Below are positions 1,856-23,006 of a stretch of 64,000 nt of DNA, one piece after another. The notes beneath the pieces were generated by a model. That model searched no databases. It saw only the letters and a program-made list of their open reading frames with translations, and had not been told where the DNA came from. The stretch spans positions 62,001 to 126,000 of the IMG/VR virus record IMGVR_UViG_3300031521_001337; one strand, written 5' to 3'. How positions within the stretch are numbered: the stretch's first letter is position 1; every line of letters begins with the position of its first letter. A program made the translations under genes and the position numbers.

Positions 1856-2468
1856 GTGTTAAACAGAATTAAATTAATTGATGTAATTTTAGATAATCAA
1901 TCAGCAACTGATAATGATTTAATTACAGCATTAGAAAATTTTATTGCAAACAGCAAGCCTTATAATCATGAAGAAGATAGTTCATTGAGAGGGTGTGGAG
2001 TTGAAAAACCATCACCTGATAAGTTTGCAAAATTAAAAGATATAGATTGTTCAACATTGTCAGAAGAAACAGAGTTGATTGAATCTATCTTTAACAAAAG
2101 AGAATTAGCATACTTAGTAGTTAGTTCTAAAAAACAATTAATTGAATTACAGAAAGTATTAAAAGAAATTTATAAAGTAATTAAAGAAAAAGATGACGAA
2201 TAACGATAACGGAAAGACAATATTGATGGTAGCATCAACTATGTCTGTAGAAAAAATTATTGAATTGCTTGATGGTGCTCTAAATGGGTATAAAACAGCA
2301 ACCGATAAAGCACAAGCTTATAAAAGATTAGAAGTAGTATGTTCATTAGTCATGGCTAAAAACATTGCACCTAATCCAGAAACTGCTGTATTAATGACTA
2401 AAAAGATTGATGATCTTAAACGTATGGACGATCTTATTAATCCAAACGGAACTTCAAATTCAAACTAA
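1856..2468 (+). CDS. two hypothetical proteins (1856..2203, 2193..2468)
   Basis: Overlapping + strand ORFs, no motif recognised. Confidence 0.6.
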
Positions 2469-2478
2469 ATTTAATTAT

Positions 2479-2745
2479 ATGTGGTTAATTTATTTTATTT
2501 CAATTCTTTTAATGATATATATAATGTATATCGTAAAAGTAAAACTTTATGAAGATCCTAATTATCTTGAAAAAGTTCAAGGTACAATAGGATTTTATGC
2601 ATTAGGAATGGTGATTACATTTATTCCTATTATAAATACTCTTGGAGTATGTTTTTTCATGTATATGCTGATAAGGTTATTACTTGATGAAGAAATCTAT
2701 TACAAGCCAGGTCGAATCCTTAAATTTTTAAACAAAAAATGGTAA
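2479..2745 (+). CDS. small membrane protein
   Basis: ATG at 2479 after previous stop; hydrophobic; resembles 1044..1391. Confidence 0.65.
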   Translation: MWLIYFISILLMIYIMYIVKVKLYEDPNYLEKVQGTIGFYALGMVITFIPIINTLGVCFFMYMLIRLLLDEEIYYKPGRILKFLNKKW

Positions 2746-2951
2746 AATTAATTTTTATTTTCGTAGCAAAAATTATAGGGTATCTCCTTATTTTATTTGC
2801 GTGGTTCGGCATTGTCGCACCTTTTCTTGTGAGTTATCCAAGCAATACTTTGGTAGCTGTCGGTTTTATCGGCACAATCGCAGTAATGTTTTTTTGGCTA
2901 TATTCTATTATCAGAACAATTCAAAAATTCTCTAAACAATTTCTTAATTAA
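2739..2951 (+). CDS. small two-TM membrane protein
   Basis: 70 aa hydrophobic ORF directly upstream of the SPFH gene. Confidence 0.7.
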   Translation: MVKLIFIFVAKIIGYLLILFAWFGIVAPFLVSYPSNTLVAVGFIGTIAVMFFWLYSIIRTIQKFSKQFLN

Positions 2952-2962
2952 AACAACAAAAA

Positions 2963-3838
2963 ATGAAAAACTTCAAGTTTTTAGCAATTTGCGTAATTGC
3001 TGTTCTCTCAATGTCTTTAACTTCTTGTATGCACACAACTGATCCGGGTTATGCCTCTGTAATTAATGAACGTTATGGTTCAGACAAAGGTGTTCAACCA
3101 GTTCCAGTAGGCCCCGGTACTTATTACTCTGGTTTTGGTCAGGATTATTTCGATTTTCCTACTTTCCAAGTAAACTGGACATTTACTCATGACAAATCTG
3201 AAGGCTCTGACACTAATGAAGAATTTACATTTCAAACCAAAGAAGGTATGGAATGTGGAGTAGATTTAGGTCTTGCTATGCACTTTGATATGGATAAATT
3301 GCCGAAAATGTATACAACTTATCGTAAAGGCGTAGAAGAAATTCGTGGTACTGTAGTTCGTAATGCCATTCGTGATGCTTTGAATAGAGTAGCTGGTAAT
3401 ATGCCGGTTGAATCTGTTTATGGTAACGGTAAAGGTTTACTAATTGACACAGTATCAAAACTTGTTAAAGCTCAACTCGCTCCTAATGGAATTGTAGTAG
3501 ATCGTCTATCTTTAATTGGATCAGTACGTATACCTCAATCTATTAAAGATGCGTTGAATTCTAAAGTTCAGATGACACAAGATGCGCAACGTGCGCAAAA
3601 TGAGGTTGTTAAAGCCGAAGCAGAAGCTAAAATTAAAGTAGCTAAAGCACAAGGTGATGCTGAAGCTATGCTTACTAATGCACGTGCAGAAGCTGAAGCT
3701 AATAAACTTAAGAATTCTACTTTAACTCCGTTGTTGGTTCAAATGCGTTGGATTGAAGCATGGCAAGAAGGTGGTTCACACGTTCCTACTTATGTTACTG
3801 GTGCTGCCGGTAATAGCTTCATGATGCAAATGAAGTAA
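2963..3838 (+). CDS. SPFH/band 7/prohibitin-domain lipoprotein
   Basis: Lipobox-like LTSC; SPFH core (IRDALNRVAG...SVYG); Ala/Glu coiled coil AEAEAKIKVAKAQGDAEA; WIEAW..G tail. Confidence 0.9.
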   Translation: MKNFKFLAICVIAVLSMSLTSCMHTTDPGYASVINERYGSDKGVQPVPVGPGTYYSGFGQDYFDFPTFQVNWTFTHDKSEGSDTNEEFTFQTKEGMECGVDLGLAMHFDMDKLPKMYTTYRKGVEEIRGTVVRNAIRDALNRVAGNMPVESVYGNGKGLLIDTVSKLVKAQLAPNGIVVDRLSLIGSVRIPQSIKDALNSKVQMTQDAQRAQNEVVKAEAEAKIKVAKAQGDAEAMLTNARAEAEANKLKNSTLTPLLVQMRWIEAWQEGGSHVPTYVTGAAGNSFMMQMK

Positions 3839-6159: not shown

Positions 6160-6566
<407 letters not shown>

Positions 6567-6581
6567 TTAAATTGAAATTAA

Positions 6582-8072: not shown

Positions 8073-8437
8073 TAATCGAAAATTTTAAAATACATCATCT
8101 TACTAGGGATCAATTTAAATTTGTTCAAGAAATAATATTTAAAAATAATTGTTCATGGGTAGGATCACACACAACTAACATTAAAGAACATTCAGATAGT
8201 AATGATATTTCTATTGTAGTAAATAATCTTGAGGCGAGATCTGGATCAGATATTGTACAAGGTATATTTGATCAACTTAGAGGAGAAGAAATTACTTTTG
8301 AACAATTTAAAGAATTATATTTTATTAATATTCCTAAATTTACTAAACAACAAATGTTTGATTTTGCGGAATTTTATGCAAATAATTCAGACACAATATT
8401 AAATGATGAATTGCTAAAACAATTTTTAAATCCATAA
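8069..8437 (+). CDS. paralog array 1, member 5
   Basis: ENFKI...VQEIIFKNNCSW...EITFEQF...FAEFY. Confidence 0.8.
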   Translation: MIIENFKIHHLTRDQFKFVQEIIFKNNCSWVGSHTTNIKEHSDSNDISIVVNNLEARSGSDIVQGIFDQLRGEEITFEQFKELYFINIPKFTKQQMFDFAEFYANNSDTILNDELLKQFLNP

Positions 8438-9336
8438 TGAACGAAACTCAAACAGAAATTGGAGTTGTTATCGGGAGATTTCAGCTACACGAATTGCATA
8501 CTGAACATATCAAGTTAATTGAACATGTTCTTGCAAACCACGAAAAGGTAATTTTATTCTTAGGAACTACATCTGCAATGGGTACTCAAAGAAATCCATT
8601 GGATTTTATTACCCGTAAAGCTATGATCGAAGCACATTTTAGAAATAGAATATCTTCAATTGTACCACTTGCTGATTGTAAATCCAATGAAGTATGGTCT
8701 ACTCAAATTCGTACTAAAGTAAGAGATATTTTTCCATCTGGAACAGTTACTCTTTATGGAGGTAAAGATTCGTTTATTCCATATTATACTGGAAATTGGA
8801 AAACAACTGAACTTGAACCAGAAGTCTATATATCTGCAACAGATATTAGAAAGAAAGTTGCCGGACGTATATTAGCATCATCTGATTTCAGAGCTGGTAT
8901 AATTTATTCGGTTTTTTCACAATATCCCCGCTCATTTTCAACAGTTGATGTTGCAATCTTTAATGAAAAAGGTGAAATTCTATTAGGTCAAAAACCTGAT
9001 GAAAAAGAATGGTGTTTTGTTGGAGGATTTGTTGATGTTACTGATGAATCCGATGAAGCTGCTGCTCGTCGTGAAGGTAGAGAAGAAACAGGTCTTGAAC
9101 TTGCTGACTTTGAATTCGTTTGTTCAAAACGTGTAGAAGATTGGCGATATAAGAATTCACATGATGCTAAAATTATGACGCATTTATACAAATGTAAATA
9201 TACTTTTGGTAGTCCACAACCTCAAGATGATATTGCTGCCTTAAAATGGTTCCCATACGGTCCTGAGCTAGACAAAATCTTGGTTGGAGAACATAAAAAG
9301 TTATTAGTTGACTTATTAAAAAATACTGAAAAATGA
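8437..9336 (+). CDS. bifunctional NMN adenylyltransferase / Nudix ADP-ribose pyrophosphatase (NadM-Nudix)
   Basis: GRFQ...H..H nucleotidyltransferase motif, RNPLDF..R, ISATDIR; Nudix box GGFVD...AAARREGREETGL. Confidence 0.92.
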   Translation: MNETQTEIGVVIGRFQLHELHTEHIKLIEHVLANHEKVILFLGTTSAMGTQRNPLDFITRKAMIEAHFRNRISSIVPLADCKSNEVWSTQIRTKVRDIFPSGTVTLYGGKDSFIPYYTGNWKTTELEPEVYISATDIRKKVAGRILASSDFRAGIIYSVFSQYPRSFSTVDVAIFNEKGEILLGQKPDEKEWCFVGGFVDVTDESDEAAARREGREETGLELADFEFVCSKRVEDWRYKNSHDAKIMTHLYKCKYTFGSPQPQDDIAALKWFPYGPELDKILVGEHKKLLVDLLKNTEK

Positions 9337-10246: not shown

Positions 10247-11677
10247 ATGCCAAAATTTCATCCAACAACCGCAACTGATGCATATAAATTTGTGCATTGG
10301 ACGCAACGTCCTTCGGGATTGACAAGACTTATGTCTTATGGAGAACCTCGTGTAGGAGGTCAACACTCTCATATTGTTTTCTATGGTATACAATATTTCA
10401 TAAAAGAATATTTTATGACTGTTGTCACTAATGAAGATATTGAACGTGGTGCTCGTAGAAGTTTAAATACTTTTGGTAACCCTGGTTATTTCCCTCAAGA
10501 AATTTGGGAAAAAGTTCGCGATTTAGGATATTATCCTTTAGAAATCAAAGCTGTAAAAGAAGGAACTGTTGTTCCAACTGGTAATGTTTGTTATACAATT
10601 GAAGCTACTGAAGAGTGGTTTGCACCAATGGTTAGTCACTTCGAACCTTGGTTAATGTGGAATTGGTATCCAGTTGCCGTTGCTACTCGTATGTATAATA
10701 TTCATAAAGGTATTACTCCATCATTCAAAATCTCTACTAACAACGCTATGTTGGATTATGTAGTTAATGATTTTGGATTAAGAGGTGCTCAAGGTCATGA
10801 AGCTGCTTGTTTAGGTGGTTCTGCTGCTTTAATCTTTTCTGATGGTTCTGATAATGTTCCAGCAATGGAATTTATTGAAGACTATTACGGAGATGCAACC
10901 GTAGGAAAATCTGTATGGGCAACTGAACACTCAGTAGCAACTGTATTTGGTCCTGGTCAGGGAGAATTTGATTATGTCAATGCTCAATTTGATCGCGCTG
11001 GTGACGATGCTATGGTATCAATTGTTATTGATTCTTATGATGATACTAATTTCATTAAAAATGTTATTGGTTCAGAAGCAATCAAACAACGTATTATCGC
11101 ACGTCCAGGTAGAACTATTTTACGTCCGGATTCTGGTGTTCCGTTAACAAATATGATTAAGTATTCTGAAATGCTTGGTAATATTTTTGGATATCACTTA
11201 AATGAAGTAGATTACAGAGTAATTAATCATAATGTAGGCTTAATTCAAGGAGATGGTATGAATGAAAATTCAATCGTTGATATTTATTCAGAATACATTA
11301 AAACTGGTTGGTCTTGTGAAAACTTTGCGGTTGGTTCAGGTGGTGGTTTGCTTGTTGAAGGATTGACCAGAGATACAGATCGTTGGGCAGTAAAATGCTG
11401 TTTCGCTGTAATTGATGGAGAATCAAAAGATATTCGTAAATCTCCTAAAGGAGATATGACTAAAGCTTCAAAAGCTGGTATTTTGAAACTTCATAAAGCC
11501 GGATCAGAATTCATTACTATCGAAAGTTCTAAAGAACAATATGGTATTAATAATGGATATGCTGATGAACTTGAAATAGTTTATCGTAATGGTAAATTAA
11601 TGAGAGATCAACATTGGACAGAAATTCGCACTATTGCTAAGAGTTATCTTGAAGCCGATTTAAAAACAAGTAAATAA
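10247..11677 (+). CDS. nadV: nicotinamide phosphoribosyltransferase (NAMPT)
   Basis: TDAYK.H, DFGLRG, ATEHSV, VIDSYD, RPDSG, IQGDG, GSGGGLL, RDT motifs. Confidence 0.95.
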   Translation: MPKFHPTTATDAYKFVHWTQRPSGLTRLMSYGEPRVGGQHSHIVFYGIQYFIKEYFMTVVTNEDIERGARRSLNTFGNPGYFPQEIWEKVRDLGYYPLEIKAVKEGTVVPTGNVCYTIEATEEWFAPMVSHFEPWLMWNWYPVAVATRMYNIHKGITPSFKISTNNAMLDYVVNDFGLRGAQGHEAACLGGSAALIFSDGSDNVPAMEFIEDYYGDATVGKSVWATEHSVATVFGPGQGEFDYVNAQFDRAGDDAMVSIVIDSYDDTNFIKNVIGSEAIKQRIIARPGRTILRPDSGVPLTNMIKYSEMLGNIFGYHLNEVDYRVINHNVGLIQGDGMNENSIVDIYSEYIKTGWSCENFAVGSGGGLLVEGLTRDTDRWAVKCCFAVIDGESKDIRKSPKGDMTKASKAGILKLHKAGSEFITIESSKEQYGINNGYADELEIVYRNGKLMRDQHWTEIRTIAKSYLEADLKTSK

Positions 11678-15608: not shown

Positions 15609-15629
15609 TATATCTTTTTTAAAATATAA

Positions 15630-15792
15630 AATATTGAAATGTTGGCTTGGAAGCAGCAATCATCTAAAGAGTGGGACGAGACTACGTTGATAAACCAATT
15701 CAAGTTGGAATTTAATGTGGTAAGGTAAGTTGGAGGTCACCCCGTAACTGGTAAGGACTGAAATCCCTTTGGCGTAATAGCACATCAATATT
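15630..15792 (+). ncRNA. 23S rRNA H43-H44 (uL11-binding GTPase-associated centre) mimic with 99-nt insertion
   Basis: ATGTTGGCTTGGAAGCAGCAATCATCTAAAGAGT...GCGTAATAGCACA, closed by AATATTGA/TCAATATT. Confidence 0.75.
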
Positions 15793-15802
15793 TTTAAAAA
15801 TT

Positions 15803-15958
15803 AAATGAGTAACATCCGAGAATGGTCGGTGAGTCAGGTAAGAGGGGAACCCAATGCTGACTTAGAATGAGGAATTAAGTCCAGATATCCCTAACGAAAA
15901 GATGTAGGTGTAGTCCCGTGGATAACATGCGTGTAATTGTCCCTCCCGTTACTCATTT
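15803..15958 (+). ncRNA. candidate structured ncRNA (~156 nt)
   Basis: 11-bp closing stem AAATGAGTAAC/GTTACTCATTT; internal CCGA/TCGG and TGAGTCAG/CTGACTTA stems. Confidence 0.6.
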
Positions 15959-15965
15959 TTAAAAT

Positions 15966-16038
15966 GCTCCAGTAGCTCAGTGGATAGAGCATCGGTTTTC
16001 TAAACCGAGGGTCGCTGGTTCAAGTCCAGCTTGGAGTA
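15966..16038 (+). tRNA. tRNA-Arg(TCT)
   Basis: TCGGT-TTTCTAA-ACCGA. Confidence 0.95.
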
Positions 16039-16039
16039 C

Positions 16040-16525
16040 AACTAGGTTTATTTATTATTAGCTACGATAGAATAAACCATCAAAGATGGGGTTGTAGTCT
16101 TAACTTATAAAGTTATTGCCCATACCAATTAACAAAACTAACTAGGGTCGAGCTACATTTTGCCACTGTTAGTATTAGACTTAGAGATCAGAGGTAGCCG
16201 TGACTACTCTAAGTTGAACAAATAAAATCTCTTTAATTGAAGCAAAACGGTAACCAGGGGGAGACACCCAACCCAATAAGGGGTAAGGACGAAAGTTGAG
16301 TACGTAGGTTATAAACCATAGCAGTGGTTGAATGTTTTGGTAAATGTAGTTATGATATGGTTAGTGTTCGCAGAAAAGCCTTCGTTATGACCTAAGTCAA
16401 TATAATTATTCCACTCTGCTTAAAGTGAATAAAGAGATTTTTTATGCCTACTTATACCCTCAAGCTTATATCTTGTTGAAAGGTTATTTGGTGACAGCCT
16501 GGTTCAATCCCAGGAGTAGGTACAA
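16040..16525 (+). ncRNA. candidate large ornate ncRNA (~480 nt)
   Basis: Several long-range helices of 9-12 bp, some crossing; ends in a T-arm-like hairpin CCTGG-TTCAATC-CCAGG. Confidence 0.55.
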
Positions 16526-16526
16526 T

Positions 16527-17006
16527 ATGGAAAGAAGTAAAAATGAATTATTAGCAATTGAAAAAGGATATAAAATAACTATAAATGGTGATATTTTAAA
16601 TCCTAAAGAAAAAATTTTAACAGGAACTATTTATAATAAAAATTATAAAAAATTTAATATTAGATTAAATGAAAAACATATTCCAGTTAAAGTACATAGA
16701 TTACAAGCATATCAAAAATTTGGAGAAATTATTTTTAACGAAGATATAGTAGTTAGACATTTAGATGGTAACGGATTAAATAATTCTTGGGATAATATTG
16801 AAATTGGATCATATAGTGATAATATGATGGATAAACCTAAAGAAGAAAGAATTAGAATTGCATCTAATGCTAATAAAAAATATTCTGATGAATTAGTTTT
16901 AGAAATTAAAGCATACCGAAATTTAGGGCATACTTATAAAGAAATTATGGAAAAATATAATATTAGTAGTAAAGGAACCATTAGTAATATTATTAATAAT
17001 AGATAA
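16527..17006 (+). CDS. HNH homing endonuclease with C-terminal HTH
   Basis: KVHRL.AY...VVRHLDGNGLNN..DNIEIGSYSDN; ATG at 16527 preferred over GTG 16425, which overlaps structured RNA. Confidence 0.85.
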   Translation: MERSKNELLAIEKGYKITINGDILNPKEKILTGTIYNKNYKKFNIRLNEKHIPVKVHRLQAYQKFGEIIFNEDIVVRHLDGNGLNNSWDNIEIGSYSDNMMDKPKEERIRIASNANKKYSDELVLEIKAYRNLGHTYKEIMEKYNISSKGTISNIINNR

Positions 17007-20861: not shown

Positions 20862-20950
20862 GGGGGTGTGGCGAAATTGGTAGCCGCAGCTAAATATAGG
20901 TTAGACCATAGCGGTCGTGAGACATGGGGGTTCGAAGCCCTCCGCCCCCA
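20862..20950 (+). ncRNA. tRNA-Leu-like RNA with a distorted, 7-nt-expanded anticodon arm
   Basis: Leu-type acceptor, D, variable and T arms; anticodon region GCTA-AATATAGGTTAGACCA-TAGC. Confidence 0.7.
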
Positions 20951-20956
20951 CTAAAT

Positions 20957-21035
20957 TCCCCAATGGCGTAATTGGCAGACGCGTATTCTTCGGAATATGT
21001 CGAGAGACATGTGGGTTCGAGTCCTCCTTGGGGGA
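20957..21035 (+). ncRNA. class II tRNA-like RNA with a UUCG tetraloop in place of the anticodon loop
   Basis: TATTC-TTCG-GAATA; D-arm GCG..CGC; variable arm GTC-GAGA-GAC; acceptor TCCCCAA/TTGGGGG. Confidence 0.7.
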
Positions 21036-21041
21036 GCAAAT

Positions 21042-22061: not shown

Positions 22062-23006
22062 ATGAAGATATTATTTATTGGTAATGGAATTTTTGGAGTT
22101 CCAGCATTAAAAAAATTACATGAAATTTATCAAGTTACAGTTATAACAACACCACCACGACGTTTCGGTAGAGTAGTACAAAATACACCTATTTATATTG
22201 CTGGTAAAGCTTTAGGTTGTTTAGTATATACTGCTAATGATATTAATGAACTTGAACATCGTATAATTAGTACTGATTTTGATTTAATTGTTGTTGCATC
22301 TTATGGACAAATAATTAAAATGAAAATACTTGATTCTGCTAAATATGGTGCAATTAATATTCATGGTTCATTATTACCGAAGTATAGAGGTGCTTCTTGT
22401 ATTCAAGCTGCTATTTTGAATAGAGATTCTGAAACAGGAGTTACATTTATTAAAATGAATGCTGCTGTAGATGCTGGAAGTATTATTACTCAACGTAAAA
22501 TGTATCTACCTGTAGGAATGGGATATATTATGCTTCTTGATCAATTATCAAACTTAGCTGCTGAAAATATTCTTCTAACAATCACTAAATATACTCGTGG
22601 AGTTATTTTAAGACCACAGATAGAAAGTGAAGCTACATATTGTTGTAAAATAACTAAAGATGATTGTTTACTTGATTTTAATAAAAATGTTGATGATGTA
22701 TATGCAAAAATGAAGGCATATGAATCGAATCACGGAGTATTCTTTTATTTACCAGATAACAATACTGAAGTTAAAATTAAAGATGCATGTATGTATACTG
22801 GACGTGTTAAAGGTGATTTCTTAGATGGAGAATTAATTTGTGTTGAAAATAATAAACTTTTTATAAATTGTAATAAAAGTAGTCTTCAGATTGTTTCATT
22901 ACAATTACCTAATAAAAAGGTTATGTCAGCTAGAGATTTTATTAATGGTCATAAGAAGTTAATCACACAATTTGCTGATTTACAAATAATTGTACATAAT
23001 GTATGA
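22062..23006 (+). CDS. fmt: methionyl-tRNA formyltransferase
   Basis: KILFIG...FG..AL..L, TTP.RR.GR, VASYG.I, INIHGSLLPKYRGA..IQ, ETGVT, VDAG.I; ~314 aa. Confidence 0.92.
   Translation: MKILFIGNGIFGVPALKKLHEIYQVTVITTPPRRFGRVVQNTPIYIAGKALGCLVYTANDINELEHRIISTDFDLIVVASYGQIIKMKILDSAKYGAINIHGSLLPKYRGASCIQAAILNRDSETGVTFIKMNAAVDAGSIITQRKMYLPVGMGYIMLLDQLSNLAAENILLTITKYTRGVILRPQIESEATYCCKITKDDCLLDFNKNVDDVYAKMKAYESNHGVFFYLPDNNTEVKIKDACMYTGRVKGDFLDGELICVENNKLFINCNKSSLQIVSLQLPNKKVMSARDFINGHKKLITQFADLQIIVHNV

Follow-up and report, generated by a model that had tools for sequence, protein, structure and literature searches.

A stand-alone, phage-borne RNA resembling the GTPase-associated centre of 23S rRNA

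The DNA analysed here (the window) is a 64-kb stretch of IMG/VR virus record IMGVR_UViG_3300031521_001337, from an uncultured, large phage of about 30% GC to which known phages are only distant relatives. Nucleotides (nt) 15628-15794 on the plus strand appear to be the gene of a stable non-coding RNA of about 167 nt, the expression of which we infer. Judged from its sequence, the core of this RNA is a homologue of the 58-nt uL11-binding domain, or GTPase-associated centre (GAC), of 23S rRNA. In the ribosome, uL11, the stalk, the translational GTPases, and thiopeptide antibiotics all dock onto the GAC. To our knowledge, phages carry tRNAs, transfer-messenger RNA (tmRNA), and a few ribosomal proteins (r-proteins), but no piece of rRNA. 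The element belongs to a phage-borne family that appears to be undescribed, and for which we propose the name GAC-like RNA.

The E. coli K-12 rrlH gene served as the reference (23S nt 1051-1108 = gccaggATGTTGGCTTAGAAGCAGCCATCATTTAAAGAAAGCGTAATAGCTCActggt), and the conserved halves of the phage RNA are numbered by E. coli 23S. Positions 15639-15669 are identical to E. coli 1057-1087 at 28 of 31 nt, with three mismatches. The second half, GCGTAATAGCACA at 15772-15784, is identical to E. coli 1091-1103 at 12 of 13 nt, the sole change being A1101. A match of the first type is found once in the window, with 0.00 expected from 100 dinucleotide-preserving shuffles. The likeness to the 23S GAC is far beyond chance, and the correspondence to 23S positions of about 1057-1103, proposed in a first-pass annotation made from the letters of the window, is borne out against the reference sequence. 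No other rRNA is nearby, as was also claimed there. No rRNA gene was found in the window, which contains 24 tRNAs and a tmRNA, and a BLAST comparison of the entire window with the E. coli rrn operon gives only the GAC-like stretch, besides tRNA-tRNA similarity.

The other structural assignments of that annotation also hold. The compensatory helix proposed to flank the core (ATTGA/TCAAT) is real and is longer than noted, with 10 bp. U1090 and A1101 form a Watson-Crick pair. The insert described at 15673-15771, closed by GGGA/TCCC, consists of a 95-nt arm and a TTTG linker. With its own closing stem, a family-specific signature, and no flanking rRNA, the element is a stand-alone mimic of the top of helix 42 (H42), H43, and H44. 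Host contamination and an rRNA gene fragment are ruled out by the absence of flanking rRNA, the signature, and the phage context.

The RNA has relatives in many phages. A blastn search with the intergenic gap shows that Aeromonas phage 4_4572 has two halves split in this way as well, around a longer insert and just 5′ of a tRNA. In two independent pattern scans of IMG/VR, one for the 5′ half with the arm base and one for the linker with the 3′ half, both halves were present at 48 loci (42 unique). Full members are also present in the GenBank records of Pseudomonas phages pf16, UNO-G1W1, Astolliot, and Milchi and Xanthomonas phages XacN1, XaC1, and XbC2, while the entire GAP32/CBB/BF/pEa_SNUABM/fHe-Yen9 jumbo clade has a full member at a syntenic, unannotated position. 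When pooled, there are at least 67 distinct family sequences, with lengths of about 102-370 nt. Individual loci are denoted below by L and a number.

The fold of the ribosomal GAC is preserved in this family. A three-way junction in rRNA register, where a closing stem joins hairpins H43 and H44, is supported when imposed on the sequences. RNAalifold, run without a model, also predicts the closing stem, the two segments of H43, the base of the arm, and the tip of H44. In a MAFFT alignment of 24 diverse members, the paired cells amount to 92.5%, compared to 72.7% after shuffling (0/500), and double changes are observed at 18 of the 24 pairs. The covariation score is 0.529, compared to 0.146 for shuffled alignments and 0.07-0.17 when the partners are slid by 1-3 columns. 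The pairs in this alignment, scored with a dedicated tool, fit the rRNA structure.

Individual pairs show the same behaviour. The closing stem covaries at 9 of the 9 pairs tested, with canonical pairs at 69-100% versus 39-90% in the shuffled controls. The 1056/1103 pair is A-A in 22 and G-A in 14 of 36 sequences and is never Watson-Crick (E. coli has G1056/A1103). Covarying pairs in H43 include 1057/1081 (A-U/C-G), 1058/1080 (G-C/U-A/A-U/G-U), 1062/1076, and 1064/1074. The lone tertiary pair 1082/1086 also covaries (U-A 20, C-G 9, and A-U 4), at 92% versus 57% after shuffling (0/1000). Moreover, the non-canonical pairs of the rRNA, U1060.U/C1078, R1056.A1103 (R, purine), and G1093.A1098, are kept. 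The positions of the tertiary contacts (U1060-A1088; 1082/1086; G1071 and C1072 with G1091-C1100 and C1092-G1099; U1065-A1073) are either invariant or covarying in subsets free of ascertainment. The contacts U1060-A1088 and U1061/A1070 are those given in PMC2175356 and PMC2719339, and some of the others are those of the crystal structures.

Because the search patterns had fixed some of these positions, each half was re-measured only in sequences retrieved via the other half (n = 45 for the 5′ half and n = 14 for the 3′ half). In these ascertainment-free subsets, U1060, G1071, C1072, A1077, A1084, A1085, G1087, and A1088 are present in 45/45 sequences, and the UUU linker, G1091-U1094, A1098-C1100, C1102, and A1103 in 14/14. 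GAGT at 1087-1090 is found in 60 of 61 members. The exposed loop bases are looser, with A1067 in 39/45, A1095 in 13/14, A or G at 1096, and any base at 1097. The conservation of both loops suggested by the first-pass annotation is therefore correct in that they are largely kept in the homologues, but they are less constrained than in rRNA.

An arm is present in every member at the same site, after U1090, and ranges from about 32 to 300 nt in length. Its first three base pairs are 95-98% canonical and covary (G-C, then GC/AU/UA/CG), and it is followed by a linker that reads TTTG in 53 and TTTA in 14 of 67 sequences. A hairpin module, CC(C/G)-loop-GGUAAGG, is common to 18 of 61 arms. In the minimal members L027 and L074 (the latter about 101 nt overall), the arm is a bare hairpin of about 26-32 nt. 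Five members (L031, L034, L039, L047, and L117) have a second hairpin with a U/A-rich linker between 1078 and 1079 in the 3′ strand of H43, opposite U1060, which follows the same design as the main arm. No similarity of the arm to rRNA was found. That the module was copied from elsewhere in rRNA, or is a kink-turn, was rejected, as it has no rRNA similarity and by inspection its sequence misfits the kink-turn consensus.

Reciprocal searches connect the family to the genuine rRNA domain. A covariance model built from phage members only recognizes one copy in the window and finds the members pf16, GAP32, XacN1, L024, L083, and L074, on which it was not trained. Against E. coli 23S it identifies the genuine GAC (nt 1044-1115, 48.9 bits), and against a Paenibacillus 23S fragment it again identifies the GAC (55.4 bits). 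Both alignments extend over the full length, and the arm and linker are the only parts missing from them.

The first-pass annotation had asked whether known RNA families account for the element. None of the Rfam 15 families (including LSU, L10 leader, GOLLD, and ROOL) is found at threshold, and LSU, L10 leader, GOLLD, ROOL, and Y RNA were also rejected at permissive thresholds. The LSU model (RF02541) has its best score in 12 member loci, 23.1 bits, for a weak alignment of its GAC region (model positions 1094-1147) to the pf16 element, far below the gathering score of 50. Apart from LSU, no Rfam family matches any member. In the window it has no match at the gathering score or at E<=10, and the flanks of the element are phage intergenic DNA and tRNAs. 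The Rfam models of GOLLD, ROOL, and other described phage structured RNAs have no match in the window or the 12 loci at E<=1-10. For tRNA, tRNA-like, and Y RNAs, ARAGORN and Rfam call the flanking tRNAs and nothing at 15628-15794. The L10 leader (RF00557) has no Rfam match, there is no rplJ nearby, and the closing stem is a plain, covarying Watson-Crick helix. The statement that such an RNA has not been described agrees with our searches of the full-text literature and of the XacN1 and jumbo-phage papers, which gave no description of the family, subscription-only literature being beyond their reach.

The family is not confined to viral records. A first pattern scan of 185,579 cellular genomes gave zero members, and a restriction to viruses was concluded from it. 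This conclusion is withdrawn, because the zero was an artefact of a pattern that demanded GTGGG. With a looser 3′ pattern, 23 two-halved members are found, mostly on contigs of metagenome-assembled genomes from very diverse phyla. The two isolate-derived loci tested are prophage or phage DNA, because their genes include those for tail fibres, phage RNase H, and phage methyltransferase. A further 48 one-half matches in the cellular genomes are within the chance expectation for the looser pattern. For comparison, a true 23S contaminant (L060; MZ092003.1, Paenibacillus phage Pd_22F, at the end of the record) is contiguous 23S, unlike the GAC-like RNAs. The rRNA in L060 is probably host DNA in the assembly, and several other small 'phage' records likewise contain host rRNA or r-protein DNA.

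The family signature consists of GAGU at 1087-1090, A1101, the arm, and UUUR, whereas E. coli (gammaproteobacterial) rRNA reads GAAA...U1101. GAGU is kept even in phages of gammaproteobacteria, the hosts' own rRNA having GAAA...U1101. Because of this difference from the host rRNA, the signature indicates a single, old lineage that has been spread horizontally among phages, rather than repeated capture from hosts.

The genomic setting is that of tRNA genes. At 71 member loci, all 414 tRNA and tmRNA genes (262 + 152) are on the strand of the element, and at many loci it is located inside a tRNA array, with spacers of 13-23 nt on both sides. The element is solitary in the GAP32 clade and XacN1, and 15 of 48 viral loci are not beside tRNAs. 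A run of at least four T within 12 nt after the closing stem is present in 18/66 members, compared to 4/66 upstream. No protein cluster is common to more than 2 of 41 loci, and no uL11 or bL12 genes were found in the cultured carriers. These two observations suggest that the partner of the RNA is encoded by the host and universally conserved. No mimics of other rRNA sites, including the sarcin-ricin loop, were found in 716 kb of member loci.

Table 1. Features of the GAC-like RNA in the window, with the nearest downstream gene
Feature	Position	Strand	Remarks
Closing stem, 5′ strand (about the top of H42; 23S ~1046-1055)	15628-15637	+	Pairs with 15785-15794; 10 bp in the fold
A at 1056	15638	+	Opposite A1103 (15784); rRNA-type purine-A non-canonical pair kept
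H43 hairpin (1057-1081)	15639-15663	+	'1067 loop' UUGGAAGCA at 15647-15655; G for A1067 at 15649
Junction CUAAA (1082-1086)	15664-15668	+	Holds the lone tertiary pair 1082/1086, which is C/A (unpaired) in the window
GAGU, 5′ strand of the H44 base (1087-1090)	15669-15672	+	Includes A1088, the partner of U1060; U1090 at 15672
Family-specific arm between 1090 and 1091	15673-15767	+	Base GGGA/UCCC, 15673-76/15764-67
Long hairpin inside the arm	~15681-15721	+	Part of the 95-nt arm
Conserved module hairpin inside the arm, GUC-AC-CCG-UAAC-UGG-UAAG-GAC	15736-15758	+	Module in 18/61 arms
UUUG linker, from the arm to G1091	15768-15771	+	UUU(G/A) in the family
H44 tip and 3′ strand (1091-1102)	15772-15783	+	'1095 loop' GUAAUA at 15774-15779; A1101 (15782) pairs with U1090
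Closing stem, 3′ strand	15785-15794	+	U/A-rich tail after the stem
tRNA-Arg(UCU)	15966-16039	+	Nearest downstream gene, same strand; context only, outside the RNA

It is somewhat probable, based on these patterns of conservation, that the RNA acts in trans as a mimic of the GAC, with uL11 as its likeliest ligand. uL11 is the best candidate because the determinants of the fold and the direct L11 contact are invariant, and because any partner has to be both encoded by the host and universal. The 58-nt domain folds by itself, and L11 and thiostrepton both bind to it (PMC2719339). The C-terminal domain of L11 binds tightly to the 58-nt RNA, with Gly130-Thr131 contacting U1060-A1088 (PMC2175356). 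Binding of uL11 by the phage RNA is plausible on these grounds. A more general proposal is evenly balanced between true and false. It holds that the RNA is a trans-acting mimic to which a universally conserved ligand of the GAC binds, be it uL11, a stalk component or translational GTPase, RelA-related machinery, or a toxin directed at the GAC, and that it would thereby reprogram or protect host translation in infection.

In the mechanism that we envisage, the GAC-like RNA would be co-transcribed with the phage tRNA array, and its ends would be set by tRNA-type processing or, in about one quarter of the members, by termination at its own closing stem. The free RNA would fold like the ribosomal GAC and compete with ribosomes for the host-supplied GAC ligand. 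A possible consequence would be fewer uL11-containing ribosomes, and hence weaker activation of RelA. Alternatively, a GAC-directed factor or toxin might be absorbed. Damping of the stringent response, deregulation of r-protein operons, and absorption of a toxin, all raised in the first-pass annotation, are conjectures throughout. Its suggestion that uL10(bL12)4 could be titrated is doubtful, and uL10 binding is unlikely, because the kink-turn in H42 that uL10 recognizes (PMC10931766, citing Iben & Draper 2008) is missing from the phage RNAs. In its place is a plain, covarying Watson-Crick stem, often 13-23 nt from the next tRNA.

Several observations weigh against a uL11-binding mimic. The insertion sites at 1090/1091 (all members) and 1078/1079 (5 members) are at most 2 nt from U1060-A1088, the pair read by L11, and for this reason the arms might occlude uL11 instead of tolerating it. 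The arms may replace or exclude uL11 and show the loops to another ligand, and the location of the insertions near the L11 contact could either help or block L11. In the window RNA, position 1067 is G, and the bases at 1062/1076 (G-A) and 1082/1086 (C/A) do not pair. The energy of its single-sequence fold is no better than that of shuffles (z = -0.44), and the structural support for the window RNA is comparative, not thermodynamic. The family is rare, being found in about 20 of 50,697 GenBank phage records. A sponge would have to reach high levels compared to tens of thousands of ribosomes. The positions fixed by the search patterns should also be counted here, and the cross-retrieved subsets give the same picture.

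A less likely explanation, which still deserves some weight, is that the RNA is a decoy for an attack on the GAC and not for uL11. The naked 1067 and 1095 loops would absorb a factor from the host or a competitor that harms or blocks the GAC of the ribosome (for instance a nuclease, an RNA ADP-ribosyltransferase, or a compound of the thiopeptide type) and would protect the ribosomes in infection, with the arms perhaps standing in for uL11 as stabilizers of the fold. The bacterial toxin Tre23 ADP-ribosylates exactly nt 1095-1098 of H44 and blocks EF-G (PMC8661411), and jumbo phages encode alarmone hydrolases and many counter-measures to translation-targeting effectors (PMC7824862). Both insertion sites cluster on the uL11 face (PMC2175356), and the exposed A1067 and A1095 are mostly retained. 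The element is located within tRNA arrays, which are themselves thought to be replacements for damaged translation RNAs, and in XacN1 it adjoins a gene for an RNA-repair-type 2′-5′ RNA ligase. However, Tre23 is an interbacterial type VI secretion system effector, and no anti-phage defence that targets the GAC is known. The freely varying 1096/1097 and the G at 1067 in the window also do not favour a decoy, and RNA-repair or anti-defence genes are not consistently linked to the element.

It is improbable that the GAC core is a scaffold, that is, a compact, nuclease-resistant module that stabilizes the RNA and displays an arm with a lineage-specific function, such as base-pairing or binding of a phage protein. 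The presence of the arm in every member at one site with an invariant linker, the hairpin module shared by a subset of the arms, and a tenfold variation in arm length, as for exchangeable cargo, are consistent with such a role. In contrast, it is the core alone that is universally conserved, and the arms of L027 and L074 are just bare hairpins. The core is conserved at the level of rRNA in phages whose bacteria belong to very different phyla, and this extends to exposed loop bases for which a scaffold would have no need. No conserved phage protein partner was found.

It is very unlikely that the element serves the tRNA operon in cis or in its processing, for example as a spacer, RNase entry site, terminator, or insulator, in which case it would be a chance-captured piece of rRNA kept with no function in trans. 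The element always shares the strand of the tRNAs and often occupies a 'tRNA slot', and the stem with its U-run is terminator-like in the 18 of 66 members described above, but many members are away from tRNAs (the GAP32 clade, XacN1, and the 15 of 48 viral loci). The purifying selection on nucleotides of the tertiary contacts and the covarying lone tertiary pair would be needless in a spacer or terminator, and the GAGU...A1101, arm, and UUUR signature, set against GAAA...U1101 in gammaproteobacterial hosts, points to one old lineage and not to accidental recapture. Least probable of all is incorporation into the ribosome in trans, where the RNA would replace or supplement the host GAC as in fragmented rRNAs; the core is near-identical to the real domain, but its ends pair into a self-contained stem that leaves no sequence to dock onto H42 of 23S, the host 23S would first need to lose its own domain, and no other rRNA pieces are encoded.

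Several neighbouring features were observed. Between the GAC-like RNA and tRNA-Arg, 15803-15958 (+) is a second RNA-like piece with an 11-bp closing stem and a minimum free energy of -41.4 kcal/mol (z = -1.66). It has no Rfam match at E<=10 and no homologue in GenBank phages, and the idea of a second rRNA mimic was rejected as it has no similarity to the E. coli rrn operon. The tmRNA of the window is at 6160-6568 (+) (107 bits), with the predicted tag peptide GNKTISFARTAFMAAA. A tmRNA is near the element in several other member loci, L051 (22 nt away), L066, and L074. Just 5′ of the tRNA cluster are genes for a NUDIX-domain protein (8437-9336) and a nicotinamide phosphoribosyltransferase (NAMPT; 10247-11677), both on the plus strand. 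NAD-salvage pairs of this type have been proposed as a counter-measure to defences that deplete NAD. Within the cluster are an HNH endonuclease gene (16425-17006) and a Met-tRNA formyltransferase-like gene (22062-23006), also on the plus strand. ARAGORN reports two odd tRNAs, at 20862-20951 and 20956-21037 (+), one a Tyr tRNA with anticodon ATA and the other having a 2-nt 'anticodon'. They have no Rfam tRNA match and may be tRNA-like or degenerate.

Two other loci have neighbours related to RNA. In Xanthomonas phage XacN1 (L059), the 2′-5′ RNA ligase gene (830-1480) ends about 20 nt 5′ of the element, and a strong terminator-like hairpin (~1735-1780) is directly 3′ of it. In L119, a scaffold of Bacterium D16-76, positions 2070-3593 encode a 507-residue protein matching PHROG 850 'RNA-binding protein' (E = 8e-131), 1.2 kb 3′ of the element and a tRNA-Leu. 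This protein may be Ro60-like.

With GAC-like RNA, an entire tertiary domain of rRNA has been taken from the ribosome, altered in a fixed manner, and maintained under purifying selection of rRNA grade in unrelated phages of many bacterial phyla. It is a natural, independently evolving version of a well-studied RNA-protein model system, and it offers, in its arm and UUUR junction, a novel structural solution. If the RNA acts in trans, it would be a new way to manipulate or shield the translation apparatus, and uL11 exchange, RelA activation, and GAC-directed toxins in infection would become testable with an RNA of about 100-200 nt. Should it be a mimic for a GAC ligand, it would represent a new class of viral RNA weapon and make the base of the ribosomal stalk a battleground between phage and host. 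The family is unannotated in the well-known jumbo phages GAP32, CBB, BF, and XacN1, and merits an entry in RNA family databases.

In none of the nearest concepts, which are the leader mimics, the plant 5S mimic P5SM, and sponge RNAs, does a virus encode an independent RNA that copies a functional centre of the ribosome. The leaders of r-protein operons (the L10 leader RF00557 and the L1 site of the L11 operon) are also extra-ribosomal copies of r-protein binding sites on rRNA, and what the L10 leader resembles is part of the stalk base, the region that GAC-like RNA copies too. However, they are cis-regulatory mRNA leaders of cellular operons that reproduce a local motif (the uL10 kink-turn) with little rRNA identity (PMC10931766), whereas GAC-like RNA is a stand-alone phage gene that reproduces a whole tertiary domain nearly base for base, without the kink-turn or an Rfam match. 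P5SM, located in the TFIIIA pre-mRNA and binding r-protein L5, is another extra-ribosomal look-alike of rRNA that is thought to bind the cognate r-protein. In comparison to GAC-like RNA, it is eukaryotic, resides in an exon of a pre-mRNA, controls splicing in cis, and mimics 5S rather than a 23S domain.

The sponge RNAs (6S RNA, CsrB, and phage pseudo-ToxI) share the proposed logic, in which a protein is titrated by an RNA that resembles its natural nucleic-acid target. The pseudo-ToxI antitoxin mimic is a precedent for RNA mimicry by a phage that defeats a host system (PMC3475682). The targets and folds of the sponge RNAs are different, and none copies a ribosomal functional centre. Phage tRNA arrays, tmRNA, GOLLD, and ROOL share the genomic niche, the strand, and the large, tRNA-rich phage carriers of GAC-like RNA. 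The tRNAs and tmRNA correspond in function to cellular RNAs rather than being rRNA fragments, and GOLLD and ROOL are far larger, unrelated in sequence, and have no match to GAC-like RNA.

The closest relative is the 23S GAC itself (nt 1051-1108). The two RNAs have the same helices, the same non-canonical pairs (U1060.U1078, R1056.A1103, and G1093.A1098), a covarying 1082/1086 pair, and invariant U1060/A1088 and G1071/C1072. In contrast to the ribosomal domain, the phage RNA is found outside an rRNA gene, has its own closing stem, and carries an arm and UUU(G/A) between 1090 and 1091, with an additional hairpin at 1078/1079 in some members. It also has a Watson-Crick U1090-A1101 pair, and loop positions 1067, 1068, 1070, 1096, and 1097 are looser than those in the ribosome.

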